Of a DNA stretch of 64,000 nucleotides, positions 7,001 through 45,656 are shown piece after piece. The position numbers were made by a program, and so were the translations under genes. The stretch is taken from the NCBI GenBank assembly GCA_964270895.1, contig OZ185450.1. One strand, 5' to 3'. The stretch comes from Podarcis filfolensis (taxonomy: Eukaryota). Under the pieces are notes generated by a model. It was not told the DNA's origin and did not search any database. It was given only the letters and a program-made list of their open reading frames with translations. The first letter of the stretch is position 1; each line of letters starts with the position of its first letter.

Positions 7001-10000
7001 GTGATGTAAAATCATGATATACACATTGGTAACAAGCAGAGGTCTACATCCCTAGCATAGTTGAGGCCCTTGTTTGACCTAACCAGGTTTCTGTGGGAAG
7101 TTGTGCTTCCTGTAGAGGAATTTGCTATGGAACAGATAATGAGACACTCAATACAGATATAGGAATTGAGCTACAAAGACACTTGGGCGTTGCACTGGTT
7201 ATGAGGCATAGTGAAGCTCCATGGCTCAGTGTTAGGAATTACTGGAAAAAGAAAGCAGCATGTTATATTTTGGTATCATTCATAAGTGTATCATACATGC
7301 TAAAATATAATATGCAGGACTTAAATATATATGAATTGCTGATTGCTCTAGCTCCACCTCCTCTCCTACTACCTCAGAGCTGTATTCTTTTGAGCATTCC
7401 AGAATTACAGTCTAGTGATACAAGCAGCTCTTTCCCAGCTGTTGCATTTCTGCACATGTGAACATGTGCAATTGAGTAATGATATGTAGCATGTTTGAAG
7501 CATTCAGAACACATTTACATTATCTCAGTTATCTTTATAACAGAAGGCATGACAGTGTTATTATCACTACCACATTGTAGACTGAAAGAGAACTGGTGTG
7601 GAGGAGGGCTGAGAAAACTCACTTATGACTACTTACAACAACACAATGCCAGATGTTTTGGACTGAATCTCCCATCAGCCCTTGTCAGCATGGCCAATGA
7701 ACAGAGATGATGGAAGTTCGAGTCTAGAGAGAACCCTATTGGCTGCTCAAACCTGAAAAAGTATATAGTTCTGTTATCTATCTAGCCCAATATAGCTTGT
7801 TTTGACTGGCAACAGCTCTCCAGGAGCTCAGAAGTCTTTGTGACCATGGTAAAATTTGAACTAGGGATTCCCTAGCTAGCCCATTCTCCTAGCTAGTATT
7901 CTGCCATACCAGCAAACCAGCGCAAGAAGGGAACATGGAGGTTAGGGTGTCATTGACCACCCAAAACAGCAGATATCGTGTATGTATGTGTCAGTGGTGG
8001 GGGAAGGTGAAAGAGCAGTGCAGTTGTCGATAGTTTTAGGCCCATTCAGTGGTAAGACCTTCTCAAGAAGTTGCATCCATGGAGAGGGAGCCATAGCTGT
8101 TAGAATCCTGCAGCAAAAGGTTCCAAGTTCTATCTCCAGGGTTTCAGGTTATACGGCAGAGAAAGGCTCTAGGATGCCACCAGCAGCCAAAAAAGCCACA
8201 TGAGACCATGTGTACCAGTGGTCTGAATTGACATAAGACAATGTTACATTTACTTATTTACCTTTTTAAAAAATACACCCCACTGTTCACTACATCCTTG
8301 TAGTAACTTTGGTGGCCTTATTTACATGGCTGCATCTGTATTCTGTTCTCTGTGGAAGCCACTCAAGCCTTCCTGCCTCATCTAGGGATGAGGCACCACA
8401 GCTGAAAAGGCCTTCAAGGGTCATGATCTGCCTCTTCAGAGGTGGGAAGCTTGGAGAAGAGCCTCTGACAATGACTTGAGGACACAGGCAGGTTAGTATC
8501 TGTGTTCAGAGAAGAATATGTTTATGCCTTACATGGTGTGGAAGTTGCCATCCAAGACCTCTGTCCTCAACCATAAAACACCAGGAGTCTCAAGCGAGCA
8601 CCTTGCTTGTTTTACCTACTGGGAATTTTCTCACAGCGCCAAGCCCTGCATCTCACAGCGTCCATGCCCTGCAGACCTACTGGGGCTGTCACTCCTGCCA
8701 CAAAAAACAACAAAACAACAAAAACAACACATTGTGGCTTGTGGGTGCCATGGGTTGGTGAATAGCAGCCTTGTACTGCAGGGGAAACAAGCCCTTTGTC
8801 TGGCATTGTTGAGATCATTCAGGCCTCTGCGGCTTGATTTGTGTGTTTTATATTCAGCATAAGTGACAGGGAGCTTGTGACAGTTGCACGGTGTCTAGGG
8901 CTGTCTGTTGAATATCAAATTGTTTGACATCAGCTGGAGCACCGCTGTGAAAATTGTCTGACAGATATAGGCCCTTTTGACCATGAAGGGTTTGGAGAGG
9001 GGTCATAGGTTAGAGGCATAAAGCAGTAAGAGACCTCCATTAAGGAATATGTCTGACCCAACATTAGGAAATCAGCCAGTGTTTGCTAATTATATCACTT
9101 CTTTAATAGAAGAAGGGATGAAAATCAGAGCATCTTCTTTGCCCTTTTTAAATTTTAAAATGTTCATCATGATAAACTGAAAATCTGCTTTCCATGGTTT
9201 GGCTTCCAGGATGCATCCAGACCGAACACCAAATCCTGTTTTGGTGTTACGAGAATGATCCTGAGATGTACCTAGGAAGCTGTCTTATACAGAGTCAAAC
9301 CATTGATTCATCTGTCTTGGCATTTTCATCACCAGACTGGATTTGTCTCTCCAGGATTTCAGACCAGAGTCTTTTTCAGCTTTTCCTGGGGATGCTGAAG
9401 GTTAAATCCGGGAGCTTCAGTATGCAAAGCATCAACTCTGGCTGTGTCTTGAGGGTTGTTTTTCCTTCTTTGGGGGCCTCTTTAGTTTGCGAGACAGTGC
9501 TGTACTGGTATAGTACACATCGATTTCCACTCACAGAGCACACTGTACCCTTGCTTATAACACCATTCCATGCTACATGCCACTGGAATAGAATAAAAAT
9601 CTTAAGTAATTGTTTCTCTTTTTTCATACAATTCTGCAGTTAAAGTGAATTGAAACTACCAATTCTCATTAACTTGCACAGGGGGGAAGTAGAGTTGGGA
9701 TCCAGAAATGAGGAATATTTGAAAGGTGTATTTCAACAAAGAAAATGTGCATTTAAAATACGTACAACAAGCTTCATATCTCTTTATGTGCTGGGTCTGC
9801 TTGGGTTGCCCAGCTTGTAGAGACCTTTTAAGCTCTCTGTCTTGCTCTGGCTCTCCTTGCTTTTTGCTCTTTTTTAAAGAACAGCTGATGCCCTATCACT
9901 TTTCTTTGTTGTTTCTCCTGGTACCCAAGTAGTTTGTTTGCTTTTGTTTTGTTTTTCATAGAAATTGAATCTAATGTATTCAGTTAATAAAAACCGCAGT

Positions 10001-10656
10001 CTATAGTTTTTAAAAATAACAATAATAATCTACATCAAAGATTCGCCTGGTGTTTCTTGAACTTTGGGGAATAAGACAGTAACTTTCTGCTTTTCAAAAA
10101 TAAATATGTATGTCTCATTCCATATATTGTCAAAACAGAATCCTCTTCTCTCTCTGATTGAAAATTACAGGAATGATAGCAGCCTGTGTTTGATTTCGTA
10201 GATCTTTGCTTCTGCTACTATACGTTATGTAAAACAGCAGTGTGCTAAGGTGCAAATAAAATTAGTAAGATCCTTCAGCGAATACAACATGAAATAAGAG
10301 TTACCATTGTCCAGTGCAAAGCAAATGCACTTTAGTAAGTCTTTATTCCCTTTTCTTCCATCCCAGCATCCCTGGTCAAATGTAGCAGCAAGTAGACTTC
10401 TTCATGCTCTCAGATTTGGAGAGCTGCTAGTAGGCAGAGTAGGTAACATTGGCCTAGATGGAGCAATGGTCTGATTTGTTATGGTAGCATTATGTGCATA
10501 AAAGGAAAAGTAGAAAGTATGGAAAGGGTGTCTTGAATGGATTATAAATGTGGAAGGGAGCCAAGTCCTCACCAGTCATTGTTGTGCATTATTTATGTGT
10601 GTCCCACAATCAGTTCCTAGAGACTGTCTTGTGTTAAGGGACTATCAAAGCAAATA

Positions 10657-10898
10657 CAGTGGTACCTCGGGTTAAGTACTTAATTCGTTCTGGAGGTCCG
10701 TTCTTAACCTGAAACTATTCTTAACCTGAAGCACCACTTTAGCTAATGGGGCCTCCCGCTGCTGCCGCGCTGCTGGAGCACAATTTCTGTTCTCATTCTG
10801 AAGCAAAATTTTTAACCTGAAGCACTATTTCTGGGTTAGCGGAGTCTGTAACCTGAAGTGTATGTAACCTGAAGCATATGTAACCCGAGGTACCACTG
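10657..10898. mobile_element. 242-bp pogo/Tigger-like MITE, copy 1
   Basis: 18-bp TIR CAGTGGTACCTCGGGTTA, TA TSD. Near-identical to the copies at 24757, 28652 and 54796. Confidence 0.92.
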
Positions 10899-11097
10899 TA
10901 AATAATGATGAGTTCTGGAGAACACGGAAGTGTGTTGCCCTTTTGTGACATTTTGGTTGGTCCCAATCAGGGGATTGCCTAGTTGTGGATTTTGAAGGTC
11001 TCCCCCCCCTTTAACAGTAAAGTAGTGTTGAGAGGGCTCACCTTGAGAGTAGTGGAATGGTATGATTAAAAACAAGTGACTTGTGCTTCTTCCATTG

Positions 11098-11180
11098 TAA
11101 CAATAACAATAACCATAACCATAACCATAACCATAACAATATTTATACCCCACCCATCTGGCTGGGTTTCCCCAGCCACT
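11098..11180 (-). mobile_element. Very short 3' end of an L2-like retroelement with an (ATAACC/ATAACA)n tail
   Basis: TTTATACCCCACCCATCTGGCTGGGTTTCCCCAGCCAC matches the same 3' terminus seen at 30865-30921 and about 45657-45770. Confidence 0.65.
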
Positions 11181-13113
11181 TTACATAGCTATTTAATAAT
11201 AATGTGTCTGTTAATGGTAAGAAATTGGAATAATTGCCTCAAAAAGTATTGGGCTGTGTATTTCACCTGTGAACATACCATGCCCTTACTCAAAGTAACT
11301 TTAGGTTCTCCTTCTGGTGATATTCTAGAAAGAGGTTGCTGCATTTTGAGAACCCTCATGGGAAATTTTTCTTCTGCTTCCAACAAGTGCCTCTGGTGGA
11401 TTAGTTGCTGAAACAATTTAAAGAGCTAAAAATGGAATGCTGCTTAAGATAACCCATTTTCTTTTGCATCTTTATTGCAAGTAGCAGAGGATGTTTATTT
11501 TGAAGTAGCAAAATTTAACTGACGATGAATGGCAAACTTTGTTCAATGCTTCCATTCTGTGGAAATGTGTATCATGTTGGATGTGCTGATATGGTTGAAT
11601 TATTGTGACCGTTTATTCCATTTACAGTATCTTTGCATCAACACCAGCTTATATCTTCTCTCCCTCACCCCCCCCCCCCCGGTAATACTTAGCCAGATGG
11701 AAAAAATATTACTTGGTGTGATGCCATGTTCCTATCCCCAGAGCGAATTTTTAACACTAAGAATTTCCATTTGTTCAAATTCTAATGCACAGTTTGTTTG
11801 ACCTTCATTGGTTAAATAAAAATGGCTGTTTCAGTTGTTGCCAATGCTCAGACATATATCTGTCATGTCCTATTTTGTGCAGAGTTTCTGAAAAAAAGTG
11901 AAAATTCTGCATTTAAATTTTGCAGATTTTGTACAGTTTTCATATGAATTACACAAATTTTTAATGCAGCTTTTTACATTAAATAAATATTTTTGTGTGA
12001 AAGTTTCGTGCTCTAAAACATGGATTACAAAATCTAGAGAAGTGTGTGATCTGACTATGAGTTGCATTCTGGTCCACAAACAATTTTGGGAGCAGTGGGT
12101 TGGGTTGGTTTGCTGCAAAAAGTGGACTGAATGAATTACTTTTTGAACCCTTCCTTGAGTAGTGTCACTACTTTCACCAAAGCTTCTCTTTGTATTCCGC
12201 TGATGCATCATTGTGTATTTTTTTATTTACGTTTTGCCCAAGCCCAAAGCTCTGGATTTCTGTTGAAAATTCATTGCAGGCATTATTCAGTTTCCATACT
12301 AGGTGTGCCTGATGTGCTGCATAAGCCTTTCTGTTGAGGATCCAAGCTAAGAAATTTGCCTTGGACTTCCTACTGCTCAGAGAAATAAAGCAACATAATT
12401 CCCTGCTTGCTGCTGTATGGTTAAACCCGCAAGGAAGCTGATAATGTGCTTGAAGGAAGGCTGCAACCAGTCTCTGCCATCAGAAACTGCTTATGAATAA
12501 GGAGAAAGAGAGCCTCATTGTTTGAGGGGAGTCCCCCTGTTTCATTACAATATCATTACTGATCTTGCAAACTACATAGACCAGTCTTTAATTGGCCATT
12601 GTTGGTAATTGTTCAGGAAGTTTCAATGGTAGCCCAACTCGAGGCAAACTTGGGGCAGCCCCCACCTGCCTCCAGTAATTTCCAGGCTGGGCTCCTTCAG
12701 TGCATTCTGCATGGGTTGCTCTTGAAGACCATTTGCACATTTCAGAATGGTTCAAAATGAGTACTGAAACAGCTGCACCAGCTGCCACATTGTTTCTAGA
12801 CTCTACTCAAGGTACTGGTGTTGACGATGAATGTCTTAGGTTGCTTTTGATCAGATTTCTTAGGTAAAGTCTTGTTCCAAATGAACCAAACCTCCTTGGG
12901 CATTGAATAGGGCACCACAGGGCTCTGTAGATGCCCCTCTTGCCTCAGCACATGGGCAAAGCCTTTTCGGCATTGGCACCTCACTAGTAAATGCTTTTTT
13001 TTCTTTTGAGAATTGCACTGTTGACACGCTTCTAAGATTCAGAAAACACATGGAAAAGTTCTTTTAAGCCTTCAATATAGAGTTGTGAGGGTGGTTTTTT
13101 AAAAATAATAATT

Positions 13114-13136
13114 ACACACACACACACACACACACA
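13114..13136. repeat. (AC)n microsatellite
   Basis: Read directly from the sequence. Confidence 0.95.
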
Positions 13137-14301
13137 AATCCTAAAGAGCCTACTGTGTTTTAGAGTGTCATATTACTTTAAGTGTCTTGTGATTTTAATG
13201 TGATTGTTTATTATATTTCATGGCTGTTAGCTGCCTTGCAGGTGTAGAAGTGGGTGGAAAAGCTGGTTGTGAAAGTATTAAATAAATCAAAATAATATCT
13301 AGCTCATGATGGAATGCTTGAGGAATTTGATCATGACAAATTCTGTTATGAACTGACTTGACCCTGTATCTCCCATGCTTATGTGTGGATTCACTTTCAT
13401 AGTTTCTGAATGTTCCAGCACAAGTTCTCAGCTCAAAAAACCTTATCAAAACATGTTTATAAATTTAAATACTTAGGTTAGTGTGAATTTTTGAACAGAT
13501 TAAAAATATTTAGAATCACAGATGAATGTGGAAATGGGATGGAATGGATTTGTGAACAAACAGAAAGTGACATGGACAGCAAATTGACTGGTTTATTCGT
13601 CCCTAAATTCATGCAGGTCTCCTGCTCTGCTGGTACTTACAGGAAAATTGGTAGTGATTACCAGAGCCTCTTATACATCAACCTTAGCCCTGCAGGTCGA
13701 ACTATGGAATATCTTGTTTCATTCAAAGACCAGCGTCCTCTGAAGGCTGACAGGACCTTCTCAGGTTCTCCCCTCCCTCCCAGTTGCTGTCCACAGTCCT
13801 GAAAGGGTTCCTTAGATGATCCCACAGTTGCATGTTAAGCAGGAAAGCATACAGGGGAATAATCCCCCAAGTCTGGCTGATCAGAGGGCGATGTCCTCAG
13901 CTGTAATGGTAAAGAACAGGGTACTAAAGACTCCCACCACACTGAGTGAGGTGATCTGTGAGTCTACCTAATCTGAGTCCTTGGAATGGCATGGGAACCC
14001 TGGTGTAAGGGATATGACAGCGAAGCCCATTAATTGTCTGTGTTCCTTGTGTTATGGAGAGGAGAGGTGCCTTATGTAATGTTGTTCTGTTAGTTTCAGA
14101 ATAAAGAATTCTGGGGAGCCTTGACCTTCACCTGAGGAAGGGTTTTGACTCTGTGGTGGAGCATCTGCCATACACCCCTGGTTCCATCTCCTGGCATCTC
14201 TAGATAGGGCTGCAAATGACTCCTGCCTGAAACCTTGGAGAGCTGTGGCCACTCCATGTAGTCAATACTGAGCTAGATGGACCATTTAGCTCAGTATAAG
14301 G

Positions 14302-14523
14302 AGTTCGAAAGCATGTCAAAGTGCAAGTAGATAAATACTCCGGTGGGAAGGTAAACGGCGTTTCCGTGCGCTGCTCTGGTTCGCCAGAAGTGGCTTAGTC
14401 ATGCTGCCCACATGACCCGGAAGCTGTACGCCGGCTCCCTCAGCCAGTAAAGCGAGATGAGTGCCGCAACCCCAGGGTCGGTCACGACTGGTCCTAATGG
14501 TCAGGTGTCCCTTTACCTTTACC
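14302..14523 (+). mobile_element. 5'-truncated Sauria-type SINE
   Basis: Matches the 3' two-thirds of the copies at 20317 and 26939, ends in an (ACCTTT)-type tail, and is flanked by TAAGG (14297-14301 / 14524-14528). Confidence 0.9.
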
Positions 14524-16224
14524 TAAGGCAGCTTCTTATGTTCCATCTTGGATATGTTCCTGAACATTGTAGGAAGTCCAGAACAAATCTGAGGCATCAA
14601 AATTGGGATGGATTTAAATGTGCAAATACTTTCTTTTTGAAGGTTCTGCAGAGCTCTCAATCTTTCCTTCCATTCAAGATTATTGCATCTTACTTTCCTT
14701 GTTTCTGTGCCATGCAGATGCTTATTATGGCAGCTTGTTGTTGTTCGCTGTTGTAAATGAATACAAAATTAGGAAGCATATGGCACACTGTTACATTCCC
14801 TTAAAAAAAGAAAAAGAAAACCCAATGCAGCAATATTTTTCCAAAATTATTTATGAAGTGCCTGTGGGCATTTCTGTAAAATGGTAAGTAAATACCACTG
14901 AATTCGCTGGTTTGACAGTTGTTGTGATGCTCCATACCTTTGACAGTAAAAAGAACAATATGGCAGAGTTAACAAAAGACTAATCAGATTTCTGTTTTCT
15001 CTCCCCTCCCTACCCTTACTTTTCCTGCTGCAATCTTTGGTGGACAAAACAATGTATCTTGGGATGGTTTCCACAATGACATTTCGTTGTACGATTTTTC
15101 TGTTTCATCAGGTAAAGTGTCTTATTTCTTCTTCTTTTTCCTTGTAAATTCACTTTTTTGAATAATGCTGGTGTACTTGTGAACATAAAACATCTGGCCC
15201 GGCTGGCTGTTACCTTAAAATGATAGAAGCTTTGCTACATCATGCTTGTTTGTATGTGAGTGTGCAAATGCACATATTCATTTTCAGCACCCTATAAGCT
15301 AGTGTTAAAATACGTATTATATTTTGGCTGCTGATAAGAAAGGCAATATACATTGGGCGTAAGAGTAATGAATAAGAAAAATAAATTGTAAGGGGGAAAA
15401 CAGAACAGTAATCTATCATTCTGTTGCATAGAGTCATTAATTCTTTATGCACATTGTGTGTATGTGTGTAAAACAACAAACAGTGGGTCTAAACCCAGTG
15501 CACTGATTTTTGTAGGCTTAAGCGTGTTTTAAAACTCTTGGATTGTGGCCAGAGAATGCATTCAAGGCAGACTACATTTGCTTTTGGAGAAAATGGAATC
15601 ACCTTATATAGTAATAGTGAAGCCATTTTGCTTGTGTAGAACTTTACGTAGCAAAATGGGGGTTTATTAGGAATGTCAGAGGTTTGCAGAAGTACAAAAA
15701 ATACTTTGGGGGGAATAGCCCAATGAGGTCTTAGAGTCCTCCGTGGCTGGCATAAATGCTGGCTCACTTGGGGTACTCTTGATTTAGTAAAGCTATTCTT
15801 GAGATGTTATGGGGTATTTTGTGTGTATGTGTTCATGTGCACCCAAACATATGTGTTTAAGTGAATATGTTTGTAGGACAGCTTTTTTGGATGAAGAGCC
15901 AGCATTCCAAAAGCCACTCTCTTTCCAGAAACCACTGCAAATGAGATGCAGCCCTACAGTGCATTCTGTAAGCAGGGAATCCATGGCTATTGTGCACTGC
16001 TTGAAATGAAAATAATTGTGTGTCCTTGGAAGCAACATAAATCTACGTAAACTGGCTTAATTGCCTTCCTAGACCTCCTAATCAAAGAGACTAGATGAAT
16101 GTGAACTGACATCTAAAAATCCATAAATTTATTATTTGTTCTTCTTGCTGTGTCCAGGTTTAAATGTCTTGAAATGTATCACTTTTTCTGCCACATGTAC
16201 CTTTTTTCACTAACCCCTGCTATA

Positions 16225-20316: not shown

Positions 20317-20673
20317 GGCACGCGGGTGGCGCTGTGGGTTAAACCACAGAGACTAGGACTTGCCAATCAGAAGGTTGGCAGTTCGAATCCCTGCGACGGG
20401 CTGAGCTCCTGTTGCTCGGTCCCTGCTCCAGCCAACCTAGCAGTTTGAAAGCACCTCAAAAGTGCAAGTAGATAAATAGGTACCGCTCTGGCGGGAAGGT
20501 AAATGGTGTTTCTGTGTGCTGCTTTGGTTCGCCAGAAGCGGCTTAGTCATGCTGGCCACATGACCCGGAAGCTGTACGCCGGCTCCCTCAGCCAATAAAG
20601 CGAGATGAGCACCGCAACCCCAGAGTCGGCCACGACTGGACCTAATGGTCAGGGGTCTCTTTACCTTTACCTT
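20317..20673 (+). mobile_element. Full-length Sauria-type SINE
   Basis: tRNA-like head GGCACGCGGGTGGCGCTGTGG with a B-box-like GGCAGTTCGAATCCC, a body of about 355 bp, and tail CTTTACCTTTACCTT. Confidence 0.92.
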
Positions 20674-22516: not shown

Positions 22517-22792
22517 CAGTGGTTCCCAATTAGCTAAGTACTGCGGACCCCCCATTTTTCATAAGTCAAGCCATGGGCCCCCTACTTTTGAAAATGTTGC
22601 TCTCTCTGTGGTACTTTCTGTTTTGGGAATGGTGCCACCATACCCTCCAACATATTCCAGCACGAAAGCAGGATGCATGTTTTCTGGGCTGTGCTCCTAC
22701 ACATGGTACCCAAAAACGGGGCGTCCTGGACAGTTGACAGGTATGTTCTGTGGACCACCTGGGTTTCATGGACCACCAACTGGGAACCACTG
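22517..22792. mobile_element. hAT (Charlie-like) MITE
   Basis: TIRs CAGTGGTTCCCA / TGGGAACCACTG. The 8-bp flanks TCCCAGGG and CTCTAGGG are an imperfect TSD, and the right flank resembles the Charlie-type TCTAG target. Confidence 0.7.
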
Positions 22793-23584
22793 CTCTAGGG
22801 TAAACCACATGTTTCTCTTATGCATTGGAGGATTGTATGAAGGAGGGAGGGCAGGGCTATGCTGACCAACCCCATCCTGGTGCCACATGCCGCAGCTAGT
22901 CTCTCCCCGTGGTGTGCATGGATACGGGGGTTCCAGGGTGCACACAAGCCTTCATTCATATAGTTGTAAGTTTTAAGTCTGCCCTCCTACAGCTGCTTTG
23001 CCTGATAGATGCTACAATCTCTTTTTTTCTGCTGTAGTGCAGAAATCTGAGTGCAACAGATGAGGAGATCAATGTGTTCTGGTCCTTCTTAACGTATCCA
23101 GGGCGACTACATTCACTTCATTATTCATACACATGCATAACAGTTTGACAGCACAGAAGGTTCCAGGTTCAATCCCTTCCATTCTCAGTTTAAAAACATA
23201 CAGTTCAGGTGGAAAGGATGAGAGCTTGGAGCTGGTGTCCGTGTTAGTAGGCAGCACTGCCATAAATGGCCCAGTGTTCTGACTCTGTATAAGACAGTTT
23301 CATAAAGCTTCTTATACTTTTTCTAGTAGATCTGAAGATATGTGAAGCAGCAACCATCAGTTGCTTCATATGTCTTTTAAAGACACATCTTTCTGCCCAG
23401 GCCTTACCTGACTCATATAAATCAAACCTTGTTTTCAGTTTGTTTTAATTTACTGAATTTCTATTTTTATCTGCTTTTATAATATTGTTTTACTGGTTTT
23501 ATATTGCATTTTTGTTTTAATCGTATTGTTAGTTTTTTCTATGTTGCAGGTTTAAAAATACTAAGCCATTTATAAATGCTTTAA

Positions 23585-23616
23585 AACCAACCAACCAACC
23601 AACCAACCAACCAACC
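23585..23616. repeat. (AACC)n microsatellite
   Basis: Read directly from the sequence. Confidence 0.95.
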
Positions 23617-24756
23617 ATCAAGGGTGATAGCTGTTCCTTTTGTTATTCCCTGGAGGTACAGTATACTGCCTCTGAACAGGGAGGTTCCATTTTTCTCTCA
23701 TTCTAATAGTTGTCATGTAGAACTTGCTGCCTCACCGCCCCTCCAGCCCTCTCTGCTTTCTAAGTTGTGGCACTCTCAATTTCTTTATTATGTAATGTGC
23801 ATTACCATGCCTTTTAATTGGTAGCCATCTGCAAGCACTGTGTAGCAAAATCTATTTTTGCATCTGGGTGGATTTCTCTTCCCTGCCAGAATGCAGCTCA
23901 CTGAGCAGCTGGTTCCACATGTTCATAAATGCCGTGTGACTTTAATACAGGCACATTTGATTTTTATTGACAGCCCGTCAGGCTCGCGCCAGTGCACTGA
24001 GGCTCTTTGCTGACACGAGGCAAGCAGCAGCCAGCCAGAGAGGGGCCCTATTAGCGTGGCGAGTGCAGAAATCTCCAGGCAGGCTGCGTTCCTTCAGAGG
24101 CCGGCTGTTCTCATCCTCCTCTCTGCCATTGCCCCAAAGAATTTTGCTGTCTTCCTAAACCAGTATCAAATGACATAGCAAAGACTTTCTAAAGCTAAGG
24201 ATTAAAACAGTTGCATCCTCCTTGTAACCTTTCCTTCTGCTGGCTCTCTTCTTCCAGTCATTGTGGAATTATAATGCCAAATATTGTGTTTCTTTGCCAT
24301 TGCTGTAGTCTCTTCCCTGTTGAAGTCTCTGTGTTAGATATCTGGCATTAAGTTTTGTCCTTTACTTTAAAGTTTAGAGAATGCATTGTTCCACCTCTGA
24401 TATGGGCCTGTTTGCTTGGCCATTTCTGCTGGTCCATTTGTCCCACCCCCTAAAAATAAAACTCAGCTTCTTCCATGTAGCTGTATGTAGAAGGTTGTAA
24501 ATTCAATCCTCATTATCTCCAGGTAGGGTTAGGAAAATCCCTTTACTGAGATCCTGGGAAGCCACTGCTAGTCAGTGCAGACAGCGTTATGATTACGACT
24601 TTAATTTATATACCACTTCATGTATTAATATATATATATATATCCAAGCAGTGTACACAAAACTGAAGCAACAATAAACAACTTAAACAAAATATTGCAA
24701 AAATACACAATTACATATAAAAATGTTACATTAATACAAAGTTACCAATATATATA

Positions 24757-24997
24757 CAGTGGTACCTCGGGTTAAGTACTTAATTCGTTCCGGAGGTACA
24801 TGCTTAACCTGAAAGTGTTCTTAACCTGAAGCACCACTTTGCTAATGGGGCCTCCTGCTGCTGCCGCGCCGCCGGAGCACAATTTCTGTTCTCTTCCTGA
24901 AGCAAAGTTCTTAACCTGAAGCACTATTTCTGGGTTAGCGGAGTCTGTAACCTGAAGCGTATGTAAACTGAAGCGTATGTAACCCGAGGTACCACTG
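24757..24997. mobile_element. 241-bp pogo/Tigger-like MITE, copy 2
   Basis: Same 18-bp TIR and TA TSD, inserted in a TATATA context, same orientation as copy 1. Confidence 0.92.
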
Positions 24998-26938: not shown

Positions 26939-27280
26939 GGGACTTGGGTGGCACTGTGGGTTAAACCACAGAGCCTAGGACTTGCTGATGAGAAGGTCGG
27001 CGGTTCGAATCCCCGCAACGGGGTGAGCTCCCGTTGCTTGGTCCCTGCTCCTGCCAACCTAGCAGTTCAAAAGCACGTCAAAGTGCAAGTAGATAAATAG
27101 GTACCGCTCTGGCGGGAAGGTAAACGGCGTTTCCGTGCGCTGTTCTGGTTCGCCAGAAGCGGCTTAGTCATGCTGGCCACATGACCCGGAAGCTGTATGC
27201 CGGCTCCCTCGGCCAATAAAGCGAGATGAGCGCCGCAACCCTAGAATCGGCCACGACTGGGCCTAATGGTCAGGGGTCCT
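26939..27280 (+). mobile_element. Full-length Sauria-type SINE with perfect 16-bp TSD
   Basis: TSD TTATATATGTCATATA at 26923-26938 and 27281-27296. B-box GGTTCGAATCCC. Body matches the copy at 20317. Confidence 0.95.
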
Positions 27281-28590: not shown

Positions 28591-28651
28591 GCGTTGGCTG
28601 CCAGGGAATTAGACGGATTCATGAGATGTGATGGCTAATGGAACCTACATA

Positions 28652-28893
28652 CAGTGGTACCTCGGGTTACATACACTTCAGGTTACAGATGCTTCAGGTT
28701 ACAGACTCCGCTAACCCAGAAATATTACCTTGGGTTAAGAACTTTGTTTCAGGATGAGAACAGAAATCATGCTCCGGCGGCGTGGCAGCAGCGGGAGGCC
28801 CCATTAGCTAAAGTGGTGCTTCAGGTTAAGAACAGTTTCAGGTTAAGAACTGACCTCCAGAACGAATTAAGTTCTTAACCCGAGGTACCACTG
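28652..28893. mobile_element. 242-bp pogo/Tigger-like MITE, copy 3 (opposite orientation to copies 1 and 2)
   Basis: Same TIR, TA TSD. Confidence 0.92.
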
Positions 28894-35797: not shown

Positions 35798-38058
35798 GTA
35801 ATAAGTCAATGCATCACGTTTGTTGCATGCATTTTTCTTCTTTGATGCAGCCTTGTAGTCTTTAAGCGCACTGAAATCATCAGCACTTGCCACTTTTCCA
35901 AAAAATTGTGTCCAGAGTTGCTCATAACATATAAAACGTGGGGCTGCCCTTGAAGACAGCTCAGAAACTTCAACTGATTCAAAATAATGAGGCCTGATTC
36001 CTAGGTGAAGTGCCATTTGTAACTGAAACAAACCCTGTTCTATAATAGCTACACTGATTGCCACATTTTATTTTTACATCATTTAAACAACTTAGGTCCC
36101 AAATATGTGAGAGACCGCTTCCTTTCCTATAGACGTTCATGAGTGTTAAGATCAGCAGAGGAGACCCTCTTGCTAATTTCACCACCCTCAGAGGTGTGGG
36201 GAATTAAAAAAAAACCTTTCTGATTTTTTTCTAATAGGTTTTATTTGTTTTTATATTTGTTTTTATAATTGTGTATCATATTGCCATAATCTGTTTATGG
36301 TAAATGGTGCATAAGGAAACTTCTAACTCAATTAAGTGAATAATAAGTATAACAATTCAGTTACCAAATCATGGACATTTGCCTGGTATCACTCTTGCAC
36401 TTGATGTGAGAAAATATAAGGCTAAGAAGATGTTAGAGTTCTTAAGAGTCCCGCAAGACTAGAGACATTTTTCATTGACTGAATTGGAATCTGGTTTTTT
36501 ATCAGTCCTTGTAGGTCACTTAATCATCAATTTCTTTAATTTTTTAAAAAATCCAACCCATAATTATTCTATCAAAATAATGTTGAACCTCTTTCTCTGA
36601 CCCATTAACATTATAGATTGCATACGGGCTATTACTTTATGAAACTGAGTGCCCGGGAATTGAAGATATATGATGTTGGTTATTGGCAGTAAGTTAGAGT
36701 TAACATTCACAGTGACTTTGCAGTGCATAGATTATTACTTATGCTATTACTGACCCATAATAATGGGATGGGGAGCAATACATCTTCTCCAGAGGAGCAG
36801 CTATGCATTCTGGGCCAATAATGTAAGGCAATGTGGTCTGGCAGGAGAAACATTTTATTGGTTTACTATCGTCTGGTGCAAGGATCCTCTACTGTCTCAT
36901 TGGTATACTATAGAGTTTTCACAGCTGGATCAAAGCAAAATTTGTGAAGGAATGAAGCCCAGAAATGAGAGAGGGTTCTGCCTGTTGGACTTTCTTCAGA
37001 ATCAGATTCTGGGTTTTATTTTTGCCTGACTCCCTGCCACTATGTAATCTTCCCCAAATTTAATTGGCTGTGATGGAGGAAGGAAGGGTTTATAGCAGGT
37101 GTATCAGGGCCACAGTTAGGCCCCTGATGCTGTTGTGAGTGTGTGTACCAACATCTAGGTCACCGGGAACAATGGGAAATGTAGTACCCTTGTCTCCCAG
37201 TGCCCCACTTCAACATAGCGGTGTGTTCTTATAGTAGCGTCTAGGAGCCAATGGAAGCACTGCCATGTATGTCCCCTGCTGCCATATCTACGTAAGCTTG
37301 GGAAAGTGTAAAGGGGATGCGGAGGGTGTGGAGGATTCTTGAGGGAGGAGGCCCCCCCCAATCTGTATTGAACCCAATTTGGGATTTGGATTATGTTGCT
37401 GCTGAACATCTAAGGGTTATCCAAAATCTGTCGACAACCCAAAGTATTTTTGGTGCAGACCACAGAGGTTTGCCCATCTTACTCAACGTTCCTTTGGAAG
37501 ATTCTATCTGTGACAGTGTTTATAAAACTGCAACATAAGTAATAATAGTTAAAGGAGAGTTCTTGAAAACTGACTCTTAACAGTGATAGAGATCCCAGCA
37601 TGTAACTGGTGTGAAAAAGCAGTGTTGTCTGTTGTTTATGAAGTTGGTGACAAAGACTAACTTGGGGACCTTTTCATGGTGGGCTTGTTCTGATGCAGTT
37701 GTAGCCTGTGACCCTAGATGTATTGGGGCTCTTATCTCACAGCCCACAGTCATAGGTGCTGGAAGTTGTATTCCCCCACCATTGGGAGGCCAGGTTTCCC
37801 CTTCTTTTCTTTAAGGGAGGGTGAGACTCTGTTGCTGGGGCTGCTTTGTATGTGGTACAGAATCTGCCTCTTTTATGGGGTTCAGAGGGCAGTGAGACTG
37901 CCTTAGCTTCCGGGGTGCGTGTGTGCATTTTCAGAGGGGAGGAATACACAGGAAGGGAGGGAGGATATCGACTTCTGTAAGCTTATTTACTTCGTATTGT
38001 AACATTAACAACAACAACAATTGTTTCAATAAACTTTAAACTTTAAAAAAGGGATGTT

Positions 38059-38245
38059 TGTTTTTTTTAAATATTTTTATTTTTCCATATAAACACAATA
38101 CAACAAACATAAACATACAAAAACAAAAACAAAACAAAAAACATGTATCATTTCATATCCTAATTTCATATCCTATCTTCCCCGACTTCCTCATGCTTCC
38201 CCTTTCTGTATTCCAAATTCTTATCGATTGTTCAGCAAATCTTCT
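38059..38245 (-). terminator. L1-type 3'UTR end with poly(A) signal and short A-tail, antisense to the ORFs
   Basis: The minus strand reads ...GGAAAAATAAAAATATTTAAAAAAAACA into the TSD. AATAAA is at plus-strand 38076-38081 (TTTATT) and A8 at 38061-38068. The junction coordinate is approximate. Confidence 0.75.
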
Positions 38246-38794
38246 GTAGCAAGATCAAAGCGAAAGGCACTCTAGCTGTAACTGCTTGAGAGGAAACTTG
38301 CGGGATTTAAGAAATCCACCACCAAAGCAAAGAACTCCCCCCCCCGAAGGCAGGAGGGGGGGGAAGAAGATTTTAAAAGTGTTTCCCTGCCAATTTAAAA
38401 GAATTGGATTAAGTATCGCTGCTCTTTAACCTGGGATCGGACTGCCGGAGAAAAGGAACCGGCTAAGGACTGTTGCTATAAGAAGTTAAAAAATATCTCA
38501 AATTGACTTTGGTTACTTCCAATTTGAAACACTGTTTCTGTGGTATTACAAAGTTACTTACAGGACACTATTGACTGGGATCCCCTTGAAAAAGGAAAGA
38601 AAAATTGAAAGGGACTAGGAAACTTTTATTCCTTCTTTTTTGAAGAGTGTGGGATTACTTTGAGAAGTATAGAACTGACTCTACGCCCCCTAGAGGACCT
38701 ACAAATTGTTTCAGCAACAAGTGGAGTTTAAAATTTGAGAACTTTGTTTGTGAGTTTCAAAGTCTGGGAATGACCTTGACTAAAAGACTTTGTT

Positions 38795-39883
38795 ATGGCA
38801 GATGGTAAAGAGAAAGGGGAGTTACAAGAAACAACCTTGAGATCTGGCAGACAATACAAAATTGACACTTACATGCAAAGAAGGGCTTCTGTAACAGGAG
38901 CCTCTGGAACTATAGTGGCTGCAAAGCCAAAAGCGAAAGCAATGTCTACAGAAGAATCATTTGCCAAGGTATTGGAGAAGATAAATGACTCTTTGGAGGA
39001 ACTAAAAAAGCAAGGTGCGGAGACTAAATTGCAAGTTGCTGAAACTAAAGTACAAGTTGCTGAAACAAATAAAAAAATTGAAGAAATCTCTGGGAAAATT
39101 GACCTAAATACTAAAAGTATAACTGACCTAGGGAATAAAGTGAACTCAAATGCAGAAGCAATTGGGAAATTATTGGAAGATTCATCTATAACACGAAAGA
39201 TAGCCGAGGAAGCTAAGGAAATTGCAACTGCTGCGGAGGAAAAATTTCCACCAGTTTACAAGAAATTGGATGAATATGAACTGGCACTCTCTATGCAGGA
39301 TATGCAACGCAAGGAGAGGAACCTGAGGATCAGACTTGTGCCGGAAAAGGAAGGAGAGAACTTGGTGGATGATTTGACAAAAGAATTTTCTGATTTTTGG
39401 AAGCAGGAGCTGAAGAAAGAAGATTTTAAGATAGAAAGTGCATTTAGATTGGGAATAAGACAGAAGAGAAATCGACCCAGAGATTGTCTTATTACCTTAA
39501 GATCAAAGGAGGAGCAAGATAAAATATTGAACCTGCACTACCAAACAGCCCTTCAAATTGAAGACTTTTTTATTGAGATCTTTAAAGACATCCCTAAGAG
39601 TATCTTGGACGCAAGAGGACATTATAAAGACCTGGTGACACTGCTGAAGAAGAACTACATACCATTCAGGTGGGAATTTCCCCAAGGCTTGTCTTTTAAA
39701 TATAAGGGAAAGAAGAGAAGAATAAAGACTGTAAGTGATAAAGACAAGTTCTTGGGAGAACACGAAGAAGACCTACAGAAAGAGACATTTCCAGGACAAG
39801 GGCATCCATCACTGGACACGAACACGGTACCACCGACAGACGAGGAACAAAAACAGGGAGCTGTAGGAGGAAGGAGTAAATAA
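38795..39883 (+). CDS. ORF1: L1 ORF1p: RNA-binding chaperone with coiled coil, RRM and CTD (Transposase_22-like)
   Basis: 362-aa open frame. Long heptad-rich N-terminal half, then RKERNLRIRLVPE, IESAFRLG, RPRDCLITL, IFKDI and LKKNYIPFRWEFPQGL, matching L1 ORF1 motifs RRNNIRIIGIPE, IERAHR, PRPIIVKF and the CTD. Lies directly upstream of ORF2. Confidence 0.93.
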   Translation: MADGKEKGELQETTLRSGRQYKIDTYMQRRASVTGASGTIVAAKPKAKAMSTEESFAKVLEKINDSLEELKKQGAETKLQVAETKVQVAETNKKIEEISGKIDLNTKSITDLGNKVNSNAEAIGKLLEDSSITRKIAEEAKEIATAAEEKFPPVYKKLDEYELALSMQDMQRKERNLRIRLVPEKEGENLVDDLTKEFSDFWKQELKKEDFKIESAFRLGIRQKRNRPRDCLITLRSKEEQDKILNLHYQTALQIEDFFIEIFKDIPKSILDARGHYKDLVTLLKKNYIPFRWEFPQGLSFKYKGKKRRIKTVSDKDKFLGEHEEDLQKETFPGQGHPSLDTNTVPPTDEEQKQGAVGGRSK

Positions 39884-39890
39884 TCCCATC

Positions 39891-42800
39891 ATGGCTCTGC
39901 AACTTCTAACCTGGAATTGTAATGGCTTAAATATTCCCAGGAAGAGAAAAAATATATTTCATGCCTTAAAGAAAGACCAATTGGACTTGATTTGCCTACA
40001 AGAGACCCACGTGACAAGAGCACACAGAAAATTATTAATAAATAAAAGACTGGGACAGGAATTTATATCTTCAGACAGAGTAAAAAAGAGAGGAGTGGTG
40101 ATCTATGCAAAAGAAAAATTGCAACCGAAACAAATTTTTAAAGATGATCAAGGAAGATATTTGGCAATTGAAATTCAATCTCAAGGAGAGAAGTATTTGA
40201 TAGTGGGAATCTATGCACCAAACGAAGGGAAAGCTGAATTTTTTAAGAAGTTGCATGAAATTTTGATGGACCATATGGATTACAACTTAATTTTGATGGG
40301 AGATATGAATGGAGTGGTTTCAACAAATATGGACAAGGCACAAAGACAGGTAATAACAAAAGATGGAAGACTACCAAAGACTTTTTTTGAAATGACTGAC
40401 AATATGGACTTGATTGATATTTGGAGAACAAAACACCCATTAGAAAGAGAGGGAACCTTCTTTTCTGAAGCCAAAATGACATGGACAAGGATTGACCAAA
40501 TCTGGGTGACTAGCAGTATGGCTCCGAATATAAAAAAAGTAGAAATCTGCCCAAAAACTTTCTCCGACCATAATGCTGTAAAGATGGTGATGAGGCAAAC
40601 AACAACTGGTTCCTTCAGATGGAGAATGAATGACACCTTATTTAGAGACGAGGAGATCTGTAAGAAGGCCCAAAAAACCTTGAAAGATTATTTTGAAATC
40701 AACTTAAGGTCTGAAGTAGAAAAAAGAATAGTATGGGACGCAAGCAAAGCCGTGATGAGAGGGTTTTTGATTCAGCAAAATACTTTAAAGAAGAGAAAGC
40801 AAAATGAGAAAAAGGAGAGAATTTTGGAAAAGATAAAAGAAGGGGAAAAACAATTAAGATCGAAGCCAAAATCCCAAGAGATTCTAAGAGAAATCAAATT
40901 TCATCAAACACAATATATGGAACTGATGAATCAAGAATTAGAGTGGAGAATTAAACAAATGAGACAAAAGACTTTTGAATCTGCTGATAAATGTGGCAAG
41001 TTACTGGCTTGGCAAATAAAGAAGAGACAAAAACTCAACACGGTAACAAATATAGAAGTGGAAGGAAAAAACATAAGCAACCCAGCGGAAATTAGGAATT
41101 GTTTTCAGAACTACTTTAGACAACTTTACACACAAGGGCCGCAAAAAGAAATGGACATACAACAGTTCCTCAAGGAAAATGGGCTGAAAAAGGTTTCGCA
41201 TGAAAGTAAGATAATATTGAACCAGGAGATATCAGCACAAGAAATAGAAGATGCCATTCAAGGCATGACGCTGGGCAAATCCCCTGGACCGGATGGACTG
41301 ACTTCCAAATATTACAAAGTTTTGAAGGAAGGGTTGATACAACCTTTGAAGGAAGTCTGCAATGAGATTATGGAGGGGAAAAGGGCACCCGATACGTGGA
41401 GAGAGGCCTACATTACACTTATACCAAAGACAGAGACTGAAAAGACCCAACTTAAAAACTACCGACCCATCTCGTTATTGAATGTGGATTACAAAATCTT
41501 TGCTGATATTTTGGCAAAAAGACTGAAGAGAGTTTTGATGGAGGAGATTCACGGGGACCAAGCGGGCTTTCTCCCAAAAAGGCACTTGTCGAACAATGTA
41601 AGGAATATAATTGACATTTTGGAAAAGCTGGAAGTGAACATAAACACTAAAGCTGTTTTGATATTTGTGGATGCCGAGAAAGCCTTTGACAACATTTCTT
41701 GGAGTTTTATGTTGAAGAACCTCCGGGGGATGGGGGTAGGCCAAGGGTTTGAAAATGGTATAGGTGCAATATACTCTGAACAGAAAGCCAAACTAATTGT
41801 AAATAATGTGGTTACAGAAGAGTTCAAGATTGAAAAAGGGACACGTCAGGGGTGCCCTATCTCCCCACTACTTTTTATATCGGTCCTGGAGGTTTTGCTT
41901 AATATGATTAGGAGGGACCAGTTGGTTAAAGGGATTCAGGTCGGAGCTAAACAATATAAACTGAGAGCATTTGCAGATGATTTAGTACTTACATTGCAAG
42001 AGCCAGAAGCTAGCACGAAAAGAGTTTTGGAAATAATTCAAGAGTTTGGTCAAATGGCAGGATTTAAATTGAATAAGTCTAAGACAAAGGTTTTGGAGAA
42101 AAATTTGACACAGATAGAAAAAGAAAGGTTTCAGAACGAGACAGGGTTGACTGTGGTTAAAAAAGTGAAATATTTGGGTATAAATATGACAGCTAAAAAT
42201 GTGAATTTGTTTAAAGATAATTATGAAAAAACTTGGAGAGAAGTGAAAAAAGATTTGGAGATTTGGTCCAACTTGAAGCTTTCCTTGTTAGGCCGTATTG
42301 CAGCTATAAAGATGAATGTATTGCCAAGAATGTTGTTTTTGTTCCAAGCATTGCAAATAATTGATAAAATGGATTGTTTCAAGAGGTGGCAAAAAGACAT
42401 ATCTAAATTTGTCTGGCAGGGCAAAAAGCCCAGAATTAAATTTAAGATACTAACGGATTCAAAGGAAAGAGGGGGGTTTGCCCTGCCAGACTTTAAACTT
42501 TACTATGAAGCGGCAGCTTTCTGCTGGCTGAAAGAATGGCTACTTCTTGAAAACACAGACATTTTGGATTTGGAAGGTTTTAATAACATTTTTGGGTGGC
42601 ATGCATATTTGTGGTATGACAAGGTTAAAGCACATAAAAGTTTTAAAAATCATATTGTCAGAAAAGCACTACTAAATGTCTGGGACAGATATAAAGACTT
42701 GCTGGAAAATAAAACTCCAAGGTGGCTGTCGCCAATGGAAGCTAAGGCAGTTAAAAAGTTAAATATGGAGTCCAAGTGGCCAAGATACTGGGAAATTTTG

Positions 42801-43628
42801 GAAAAGGAAGGGGACAAATTGAGATTGCAGAGTTTTGAGAAATTAAAAGGGAAGGTGAGAGATTGGTTCCACTACCATCAAATTAATGAAGCGTTTAAAC
42901 TGGACAGTAAAATTGGCTTCCAGGTGGAAAAATCAAAATTGGAGACAGAACTGTTAGAACCCAGTACTAAGAATTTGTCCAAAATGTACAATTTGCTGCT
43001 GAAATGGAATACACAAGATGAAACGGTTAAATCGGTCATGATTAAATGGGCTCAGGACATTGGTCATAATATTTTGTTTGCTGATTGGGAAAAGTTGTGG
43101 ACCACCGGGATAAAATTTACGGCATGTAATGCCTTAAGAGAAAACATTATGAAAATGATATATAGGTGGTACATAACCCCAGTCAAGCTTGCAAAGATTT
43201 ACCATGTGCCTGACAACAAATGTTGGAAATGTAAAGAAACTGAAGGTACATTTTTTCATCTTTGGTGGACCTGCCCGAAGATTAAGGCATTCTGGGAAAT
43301 GATCTATAATGAACTTAAAAAGGTATTTAAATATACTTTCACCAAGAAACCAGAGGCCTTTCTCTTGGGTATTGTCGGCCAAGGGGTGTTAAAGACGGAT
43401 ATAACTTTCTTTATGTATGCTACAACAGCAGCTAGAATACTCATTGCGAAGTACTGGAAGACGCAAGAACTACCCACACTGGAAGAATGGCAGATGAAGG
43501 TGATAGACTATATGGGCTTGGCAGAAATGACGAGCAGAATCCGAAACCAGGGAAGAGAAGCAGCGCAAGAAGAATGGAAAAAATTCAAGGACTATTTAAA
43601 GAAATATCATAAAGTTAATGAAAGTTAG
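39891..43628 (+). CDS. ORF2: L1 ORF2p: APE endonuclease, reverse transcriptase, C-terminal CCHC region
   Basis: 1245-aa open frame. APE motifs TWNCNGL, LQETH, IYAPN, MGDMN, TRID, FSDH. RT motifs KSPGPDG, YRPISLLNVDYK, DQAGF, VDAEKAFD, GTRQGCPISPLLF, AFADD, KYLGI. Zinc knuckle CWKC...FHLWWTC. Confidence 0.98.
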   Translation: MALQLLTWNCNGLNIPRKRKNIFHALKKDQLDLICLQETHVTRAHRKLLINKRLGQEFISSDRVKKRGVVIYAKEKLQPKQIFKDDQGRYLAIEIQSQGEKYLIVGIYAPNEGKAEFFKKLHEILMDHMDYNLILMGDMNGVVSTNMDKAQRQVITKDGRLPKTFFEMTDNMDLIDIWRTKHPLEREGTFFSEAKMTWTRIDQIWVTSSMAPNIKKVEICPKTFSDHNAVKMVMRQTTTGSFRWRMNDTLFRDEEICKKAQKTLKDYFEINLRSEVEKRIVWDASKAVMRGFLIQQNTLKKRKQNEKKERILEKIKEGEKQLRSKPKSQEILREIKFHQTQYMELMNQELEWRIKQMRQKTFESADKCGKLLAWQIKKRQKLNTVTNIEVEGKNISNPAEIRNCFQNYFRQLYTQGPQKEMDIQQFLKENGLKKVSHESKIILNQEISAQEIEDAIQGMTLGKSPGPDGLTSKYYKVLKEGLIQPLKEVCNEIMEGKRAPDTWREAYITLIPKTETEKTQLKNYRPISLLNVDYKIFADILAKRLKRVLMEEIHGDQAGFLPKRHLSNNVRNIIDILEKLEVNINTKAVLIFVDAEKAFDNISWSFMLKNLRGMGVGQGFENGIGAIYSEQKAKLIVNNVVTEEFKIEKGTRQGCPISPLLFISVLEVLLNMIRRDQLVKGIQVGAKQYKLRAFADDLVLTLQEPEASTKRVLEIIQEFGQMAGFKLNKSKTKVLEKNLTQIEKERFQNETGLTVVKKVKYLGINMTAKNVNLFKDNYEKTWREVKKDLEIWSNLKLSLLGRIAAIKMNVLPRMLFLFQALQIIDKMDCFKRWQKDISKFVWQGKKPRIKFKILTDSKERGGFALPDFKLYYEAAAFCWLKEWLLLENTDILDLEGFNNIFGWHAYLWYDKVKAHKSFKNHIVRKALLNVWDRYKDLLENKTPRWLSPMEAKAVKKLNMESKWPRYWEILEKEGDKLRLQSFEKLKGKVRDWFHYHQINEAFKLDSKIGFQVEKSKLETELLEPSTKNLSKMYNLLLKWNTQDETVKSVMIKWAQDIGHNILFADWEKLWTTGIKFTACNALRENIMKMIYRWYITPVKLAKIYHVPDNKCWKCKETEGTFFHLWWTCPKIKAFWEMIYNELKKVFKYTFTKKPEAFLLGIVGQGVLKTDITFFMYATTAARILIAKYWKTQELPTLEEWQMKVIDYMGLAEMTSRIRNQGREAAQEEWKKFKDYLKKYHKVNES

Positions 43629-45656
43629 AATGATGTTGGACTGGAAAGTAAATGGTTACTATTAGCAATGGTTAAGACAAGGAAAATAAGGAAGAATAGT
43701 CTAAATTTAAAAAAGGGATGTTAGTCATGTAGAATTCTCCATTATTGTGCTGTGCTGCAGCATCCTAAACAATGTACCTAAACCAGCCTCAAGAACATTA
43801 GAAGAACCTGCTGGATTAGACTAACAAGACCAGAATCCTGTTTCTCAAAGCTGCCAGGCAGGAAATTATGAGAATATTCCTCTCAGGTTGTTTATCCTCA
43901 GCATCTGGTCAAAATACCTCTGAAAATGGAGTTCCCATCCAGCTGTTAGTTCCTCTGTTTCTGACTCAATCTGTGAGTGCTGTTGCTTGTGTAGTCAAAA
44001 TGCCATTGCCCACGGACAAGAGGGTGGCTTTGGCAGGCTGCTGTGCAGAAGTACAAGGTTTTTTTTTTTGGGGGGGGGGAATCTTCAAAGGGGGAACCAC
44101 ACAGAACAGCCCACCAAGGACTGAGTGTACACAGTGAACACACTGAAAGGTGACCTTCTCTGGGTGGGAAGAGAAACTGAAGACTGGAGGGAGGAGGGGG
44201 ACTGTAGTAGAGTGGCTGATCTTCTGAGCAGGGAGCACCTTCCAAACATGGCCAGCATCTTGTTTCCAGCCCTGCTTGTCCCAGCCAAACGGCATTAATG
44301 GACCCATGCGCTGTGAATTTGTCTGATCCTCTTTTAAAGCCATCTAAGCCTGAACCCATCAGCACATTTGCGGCAGTGAATTCCATCTGTTAATTTCACT
44401 CCATGTCGTTCTTGTTTTGAGAATAGCTCCTTGCAATGATCAGCGGCTTCCCTGCTTACCCAAGTGGCGTGAATGCGCCAGGGATTTTTACAGTCTCCAG
44501 TGTCTTTTCACGGTTCCTTTCCAACTTATTTATGTGCTGGCCTCTCTCCCCACCCCCACCCCGGCAACAACAACAAAAACCCCTTTGAGGCCTGCCCTGC
44601 TTTGGCAGGCTCTCCTTTCAGAAGAAACCGAAGACTGTGATTTACTGCCATGGCCCTGGTTGGCGCTGCCTTCGCCTCGCCCCTTATCAGGGTGTTCTCT
44701 CCTTTCTGCTAACATGCCACTGTGTCTACATGACTGATGGGGAGAGAAGTTCAGTTAGGTCAGCAAGGTGGCCGATTGCGTGCATGAGAGGAGGGAGTCA
44801 GGAAGGAGATTTCTTTGTCAGTAATTGAAGTGTTTCAGTTTTCAGTGTGAGGAGGCACCTCTCTTTGGGGTAGGGGGCCAGCTCAGAGACCAGGGGTGGC
44901 AACAGCAGCTGCCCGGAGGACTCCCAAGGAGAGAGGAGGGTGTTTGAAAAAGGGAGAGAGGCTGCCAGCTCTGCAAGCAAGGGGTGACATAACTGGGCTC
45001 CTGAGCCCCAGAGGGGTGCTGCAGAAAGAATTCAGCTGGTCAAGGGAGCCGTGGACTCAAAAAGGTTGAAAACCTCTGAATTACTAAATTGGCTTCTCTT
45101 GTCTTTCGCTGTTTAAAAATCAGCGTAGTTCTGATTCTAGCTGATAGTCTTGCAGGGGAAAGTTTTTCAAACTTATTTGTAAAATGAAAAAGTTTCTAAA
45201 ACAAGAAAAGGCCATTAAAATGAGAAAGTACTGCAGAAATTCAGAAGAGAGGCAGATTTTGCAAATCTCTCCAGGGAAGGTAGTACCGCAAGATTTCCGC
45301 CATAGCAATTTACATGTGGGATGGAGAGAAAGGGATTCATGTCCCTTCCCCCACACTTCTTTTTTTCACTACTGCCATCTGTTTTGTTGCTTAAGTGTTC
45401 CTCCCTTGAATCCACCATGGAACAGCACTGTGTGATGGTGTTCCAAGTGGGTTTCTATATGTGTATGGGGGGAAGCTGCCAGTTGATGGGTGCTAAGAAG
45501 ATCCGTATTCTTTTTACTACCATTCCCCCCCCCCCCCCGCCTTGAAATGGCCCTTCCCAGTTTCACTACTTGCAAATATTTGTGTGCATGTGGTGGATTT
45601 CAGATCAGCCTTAATTTTTTACAGTCTTGCAAGTAGTATAACATGCATTCTGAGCA

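Follow-up and report, generated by a model that had tools for sequence, protein, structure and literature searches.

An L1 retrotransposon of two opposed arms within one target-site duplication in Podarcis filfolensis: a probable product of twin priming

Two L1 arms between identical 17-bp repeats

The DNA analyzed here, hereafter the window, is a stretch of 64,000 nucleotides (nt) from Podarcis filfolensis (assembly GCA_964270895.1, contig OZ185450.1), and our subject is a retrotransposon of the L1 type located at positions 38042–43722. The element is bounded by a 17-bp direct repeat, TTTAAAAAAGGGATGTT, whose left copy (38042–38058) and right copy (43706–43722) are identical and represent its target-site duplication (TSD). 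Between them lie 5,647 bp of L1 sequence, arranged as a minus-strand tail arm of 187 bp next to the left copy, followed by a body arm of about 5.46 kb (5,460 bp) in the opposite, plus-strand orientation that reaches the right copy. The original prediction of a perfect 17-bp TSD around both parts is borne out, as a single duplication spans the two arms and neither arm has one of its own. Across the window, this 17-mer is the sole exact direct repeat of at least 17 bp outside longer interspersed repeats, and neither a further copy of any part of the element nor an overlap between the arms was found. If one mismatch is allowed, the TSD can alternatively be read as 19 bp, the 17-mer being followed by TG in one copy and by AG in the other. 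Exact 17-mers are also shared within two sets of interspersed repeats, which are likely similar to short interspersed elements, at 10654–10800, 24754–24990, and 28649–28880, and at 14315–14420, 20332–20560, and 26954–27120.

The body arm contains two open reading frames (ORFs) with a spacer of 7 nt between them, and both are intact as predicted. ORF1 (38795–39883, plus strand) encodes 362 amino acids (aa) and is homologous to lizard ORF1 proteins with 53%–69% identity, including one of equal length (362 aa) from a Logan contig that is 69% identical over its entire extent. A Podarcis lilfordi relative carries the source name "L1 transposable element RRM domain-containing". A Pfam domain search with ORF1 gave no match at E ≤ 0.001, and the protein displays a region of heptad-like repeats. 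ORF2 (39891–43628, plus strand) encodes 1245 aa and exhibits the features of an L1-clade ORF2, namely an APE-type endonuclease (Exo_endo_phos, E = 1e-13), a reverse transcriptase with the FADD motif (RVT_1, E = 3e-38), and a visible C-terminal cysteine-rich motif of the form CWKC...H...C (CCHC). An L1 ORF2 of Podarcis muralis, likewise 1245 aa long, can be aligned to it end to end and without gaps at 83% identity, and the closest relatives of the window ORF2 are all P. muralis L1 ORF2 proteins, with 75%–86% identity in the C-terminal third. Judged by these alignments, the element is a member of an L1 lineage that has many copies in Podarcis, and both of its ORFs have the full length of the family. 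As a separate observation, two P. muralis gene models resembling TRIM39 (P0088 and P0089, with RING and B-box Pfam domains) match 65% of the length of ORF1 with 54% identity; these models are either annotation chimeras with an L1 fragment or genes with an ORF1-derived exon.

The tail arm (38059–38245, minus strand) represents the last 187 nt of an L1 3' untranslated region (UTR), close to the length of about 185 bp given in the original prediction. On the minus strand it displays a poly(A) signal, AATAAA, at 38081–38076 and a run of eight adenines (A8) at 38068–38061, followed by the dinucleotide CA at 38060–38059, which touches the TSD. A poly(A) signal and an A tail beside a TSD of about 10–20 bp are the expected terminus of an L1 insertion, and the relatives described below end alike. 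The predicted signal and A8 are thus present, while the tail does not abut the 17-bp TSD directly. It is possible that CA is an irregularity of the tail, or that the TSD is the 19-bp version with one mismatch.

Positions of the breaks in L1 coordinates

The breaks in the element were located by comparison with related copies. Four relatives (L002, L003, L004, and L006) inform the 5' side, and the 3' side was compared with three copies from two P. lilfordi loci (the antisense and nested copies of L004, and L006), which form a sister subfamily with ORF2 approximately 80%–83% identical at the nucleotide level. The antisense L004 copy (OX395127.1, 27015–20106) is full-length, measures approximately 5.96 kb once the nested copy is removed, has the 16-bp TSD GAATGTTCCAACTACC on both sides, and ends in AATAAA and A8. 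The nested copy (22643–23585) is a 5'-truncated L1 of the same lineage that comprises 606 bp of ORF2 and 337 bp of 3'UTR and tail, sits in sense orientation inside the antisense copy, and duplicates 12 bp of its host element (window-equivalent 41358–41369). A search with the C-terminal fragment of ORF2 yielded only relatives of ≤70% identity, and L005, which came from such a match, was discarded as an uninformative member of a different L1 family. A degenerate 3'UTR pattern had no match in JGI metagenome contigs.

Upstream of ORF1, the body arm retains approximately 550 nt of CpG-poor 5'UTR (38246–38794, plus strand). Its homology to L002, a Logan contig and the closest relative with upstream sequence, begins abruptly at 38242, at TTCTGTAGCAAGATCAAAGC, and homology to all four relatives starts at the same position, midway in a block that is conserved in each of them. 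Because homology starts inside this block, 38242 is a break and not a natural 5' end. Directly 5' of the break, all four relatives share the conserved block GGAAGTCTGCCTTCC, and the three whose sequence reaches that far (L003, L004, and L006) continue for approximately 410–420 nt to a common terminus. This terminus reads GGGACTTCC... in L004 and L006, and in L004 it touches the 16-bp TSD. Had positions 1–164 of L002 been flanking DNA, 38242 could have been a natural 5' end; we rejected this reading because the stretch recurs in L003, L004, and L006. Since the relatives run farther upstream to a shared terminus, the inverted arm is evidently 5'-truncated by approximately 410 nt, and the relatives show this lost segment to be rich in CpG (GC content 54%–57%, observed/expected CpG ratio 0.85–1.08) when compared with the retained 5'UTR (40% and 0.36, respectively). 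The sum of the 5,647 bp, the missing 410 nt or so, and the small gap discussed below agrees with the length of the full-length L004 copy. The plus-strand arm reaches into the 5'UTR, as predicted, though not to its far end, and the element is near-complete except for this part of the 5'UTR of its family.

At its other end, the body arm stops 77 nt after the ORF2 stop codon (43629–43705, plus strand). As had been noted, these 77 nt contain neither a poly(A) signal (AATAAA) nor an A tail. They align to the proximal 3'UTR of L004 as far as its position 20303, and the end of the arm at 43705 is internal to the 3'UTR of the relatives, which runs for another 190–310 nt. This comparison was made by pairwise local alignment and blastn, as the proximal 77 nt are poorly conserved and their placement by MAFFT was unreliable. 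In the antisense L004 copy, approximately 90 nt follow the ORF2 stop before a block that is homologous to the reverse complement of window positions 38242–38061. The tail arm aligns to L004 20280–20108 (local score 121; blastn E = 4e-12) and to L006 14385–14631 (blastn E = 1.7e-10). The nested L004 copy and L006 share one order, consisting of the ORF2 stop, a variable proximal part, ATTTGCTG, CAGAAAGGGGA..GTC, a T/G-rich stretch, and AATAAA..TATT..A11-13, and the terminal motif AATAAA..TATT..A(n) is common to these relatives and the tail arm.

A homologue of the 187-bp piece therefore lies after ORF2, in sense orientation and ending in AATAAA and a short A tail, in all three P. lilfordi copies. 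Because this homologue is the distal 3'UTR of the relatives, the two arms appear to adjoin in L1 coordinates. Between the last and first aligned blocks there are 13 nt in the window and 22 nt in L004 (20303 to 20280), and L006 and the nested L004 copy have approximately 60–70 nt more in the variable proximal 3'UTR; the loss between the arms would thus lie between about 10 and about 70 nt, with no overlap. It had been predicted that the reverse complement of 38059–38245 would follow 43629–43705 with only a small gap, and such an order is found in each of the three copies. The same alignments suggest that the minus-strand piece does not come from a different L1 family, a possibility that would have spoken against a common origin of the arms.

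These comparisons bear on two other ways in which the locus could have arisen. The unit might be viewed as an ordinary plus-strand L1 with a 5'UTR that starts at 38059 and a 3' end, ...TCTAAA, that bears no tail; the TSD flanks such a unit, and some non-mammalian long interspersed elements do without long A tails. We rejected this view, to which we assign practically no chance, because it is contradicted by the homology of the relatives. Positions 38059–38241 exhibit no homology to the 5'UTR of the four relatives and match instead, in reverse complement, the distal part of their 3'UTR together with its poly(A) signal, while the relatives end in AATAAA and A8–13 and not at the position of 43705. 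Alternatively, the two arms could be separate insertions, the first a 187-bp 5'-truncated L1 tail with its TSD and the second a tail-less L1 body that later landed exactly between the tail and the right TSD copy. Nesting of L1 does occur in these genomes, as the nested L004 copy with its 12-bp duplication demonstrates. However, standard target-primed insertion cannot yield a product like the body arm, which is devoid of a poly(A), a poly(A) signal, and a TSD of its own. The second insert would also have had to enter precisely where the earlier one ended and, by coincidence, to stop at the L1 coordinate from which the earlier one starts. Two insertions are accordingly extremely improbable.

Junctions and the case for twin priming

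The head-to-head fusion of the two arms is present in the sequence, although it cannot be fixed at the single base near 38245 that was originally proposed. On the plus strand, the junction covers the four bases TTCT at 38242–38245; the 5'UTR homology starts and the reverse-complement 3'UTR homology ends at 38242, and TTCT can belong to the retained 5'UTR, which starts TTCTGTAG, and equally to the tail arm at its 5' end (reverse complement AGAAGATTTGCTG; L006 has AAAGGATTTGCTG). The junction could therefore contain microhomology of up to 4 nt, as judged from relatives with just 70%–75% identity. At the opposite end of the body arm, the internal priming site (43705/43706) has at most 1 nt of microhomology when judged from L006, which reads TGGTGAAAGG. 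In the reconstructed empty site, the nick on the side of the tail reads TGTT/AG, as predicted. A perfect L1 endonuclease site, TTTTTT/AAA, is also present on the minus strand, 3 nt inside the TSD (38042–38047) and on the side of internal priming.

Taken together, the single TSD, the tail-less body arm that stops inside the 3'UTR, and the near-contiguity of the arms in the relatives support the original interpretation, and we consider it very probable that the locus records one L1 retrotransposition event, completed by twin priming, in a lacertid lizard. Twin priming is reportedly the model that Ostertag and Kazazian proposed in 2001 for 5'-inverted L1 insertions. Under this model, the plus strand of the target would have been nicked after ...GGGATGTT (TGTT/AG), and its 3'-OH would have served as the primer for reverse transcription of an L1 mRNA from the poly(A) end, giving a complementary DNA (cDNA) of only 187 nt. 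The minus strand would have been nicked 17 nt away, and its 3'-OH (...TTTTTTAAA) may have primed on the same RNA within the 3'UTR, approximately 77 nt past the ORF2 stop. This second cDNA would have copied 5.46 kb through ORF2 and ORF1 and ended approximately 410 nt before the 5' end of the RNA. Finally, the 3' ends of both cDNAs would have been joined at 38242–38245, possibly via microhomology of ≤4 nt. The order of the nicks, the use of one RNA molecule, and the joining by microhomology are steps that we infer, while the opposite orientation of two arms from a common L1 lineage, their near-adjoining breakpoints, the 5' truncation, and the intact ORFs are features of the locus itself.

Several points weigh against this interpretation. 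The relatives, which are a sister subfamily, show no tract rich in A or U that could pair with the internal primer, and the TTTAAAAAA-like tract that had been predicted for the family consensus at the break was not seen in these copies. The tail-side nick is an imperfect endonuclease site that matches TTTT/AA at only four of six positions, so that the resemblance originally claimed is partial, and a CA dinucleotide separates A8 from the TSD. The size of the gap between the breakpoints is bounded by the sister-subfamily copies (approximately 10 nt from L004 and 60–70 nt from L006 and the nested L004 copy), and the junction microhomologies are likewise judged from relatives that are 70%–82% identical. 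Moreover, the arrangement is read from the assembled sequence of one allele. Young repeated elements of 6 kb are hard to assemble, and an inversion could be produced by mis-joined reads of such an element. An artefact of this kind would not have its breakpoints precisely at the edge of a TSD and at an almost contiguous place in L1, together with plausible microhomology, and we regard it as very unlikely indeed.

A different route to the same final arrangement is an inversion after insertion, in which a minus-strand 5'-truncated L1 was already in place and a 5.46-kb segment, from its 5' end to 77 nt past the ORF2 stop, was later flipped by breakage and rejoining. The small loss at the internal breakpoint would also suit end-joining after such an event. 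However, this route requires a breakpoint exactly on the boundary between L1 and TSD that left the 17-bp TSD perfect, and inverted repeats able to drive the inversion were not found within the element. Twin priming, by comparison, generates this geometry routinely, accounting for approximately 18%–31% of human L1 insertions (PMC2912911; PMC12016303). A later inversion is thus very unlikely. Each of the alternatives to twin priming either needs coincidences that twin priming does not need or contradicts the homology data.

Because the body of the element is cut off from both the CpG-rich 5' promoter region and the poly(A) signal, it is most likely that this copy could never be transcribed autonomously, even when newly inserted. 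This has a practical consequence for counts of L1 copies. The copy would pass a filter for intact ORF1 plus ORF2, and yet it has lost the CpG-rich 5'UTR segment of approximately 410 nt and is separated from its poly(A) signal.

Recurrence and comparison with known systems

The element is an ordinary twin-priming product with unusual geometry, at the extreme of long inverted arms, in a non-mammalian L1. A full-text literature search for "twin priming" together with "lizard" or "reptile" found no paper that describes twin priming in a squamate L1. The mechanism is well established and the understanding of L1 integration is unchanged; what the locus adds is a clean and verifiable example from a new host lineage. 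It may be asked whether internal priming in the short A/T-rich 3'UTR is recurrent for lacertid L1, often giving inverted copies that are near-full-length and coding-intact and possess neither promoter nor terminator. We consider this unlikely, and a hint in its direction comes from the P. lilfordi relative L006, which likewise has an inverted internal segment. If it were true, recurrent 3'UTR priming would inflate counts of intact L1, and such inverted copies could supply the ORF1 and ORF2 proteins in trans from read-through transcripts.

The L006 element is a related L1 at 9044–14632 of P. lilfordi OX395142.1 and displays a sense–antisense–sense layout. Its first sense part (9044–10194) consists of the 5'UTR and the N-terminus of ORF1, the antisense part (10195–13041) corresponds to window positions 43166–40251, and the last sense part runs from the equivalent of window position 42432 to the 3' end, followed by an A13 tail. 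The unit is flanked by a short possible TSD, AAATTTCTA. From this layout one can deduce that 1.25 kb were deleted and 735 bp duplicated in inverted orientation, which goes beyond simple twin priming.

In mammals, a twin-priming product reads TSD, inverted upstream segment, non-inverted 3' segment, poly(A), and TSD, with near-adjacent ends and junction microhomology (PMC2912911; PMC12016303). In humans, the cDNAs of opposite orientation lie under one TSD and their ends are ≤20 bp apart in 46% of cases, again with microhomology at the junction (PMC12016303; PMC2912911), and germline insertions have median lengths of 571 bp for the non-inverted arm and 751 bp for the inverted arm (PMC12016303). 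The P. filfolensis copy resembles the twin-primed L1 insertions of human, chimpanzee, and mouse in its one TSD, its opposite segments with near-adjoining ends, and its poly(A) beside the TSD. Its inverted arm is likewise 5'-truncated, the junction may contain microhomology, and the 17-bp TSD is within the usual range of 10–17 bp. It departs from these insertions in that it broke within the 3'UTR, only 187 nt before the L1 terminus, and has an inverted arm of 5.46 kb that preserves both ORFs. The copy also differs from mammalian twin-primed L1 in its A tail of just 8 nt, which is short as in its lizard relatives, and in its lacertid lineage, which is only distantly related to mammalian L1.

Within Podarcis, the ORFs of 362 and 1245 aa are like those of the full-length P. 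lilfordi L1 (L004 27015–20106, OX395127.1) and the P. muralis ORF2 proteins (1244–1246 aa). ORF2 is approximately 82% identical to that of these L1s at the nucleotide level and 83% identical at the amino acid level, and TSDs of 16–17 bp are found in both. Homology extends to the 5'UTR block TCTGTAG..GATCAAAGC, to the 3'UTR blocks ATTTGCTG..CAGAAAGGGGA..GTC, and to the terminal AATAAA with its short A tail. In the full-length copies of the Podarcis relatives all parts are collinear, and the CpG-rich 410 nt at the 5' end open with GGGACTTCC..., whereas the P. filfolensis copy does not have that stretch and its last 187 nt are inverted relative to the rest of the element.

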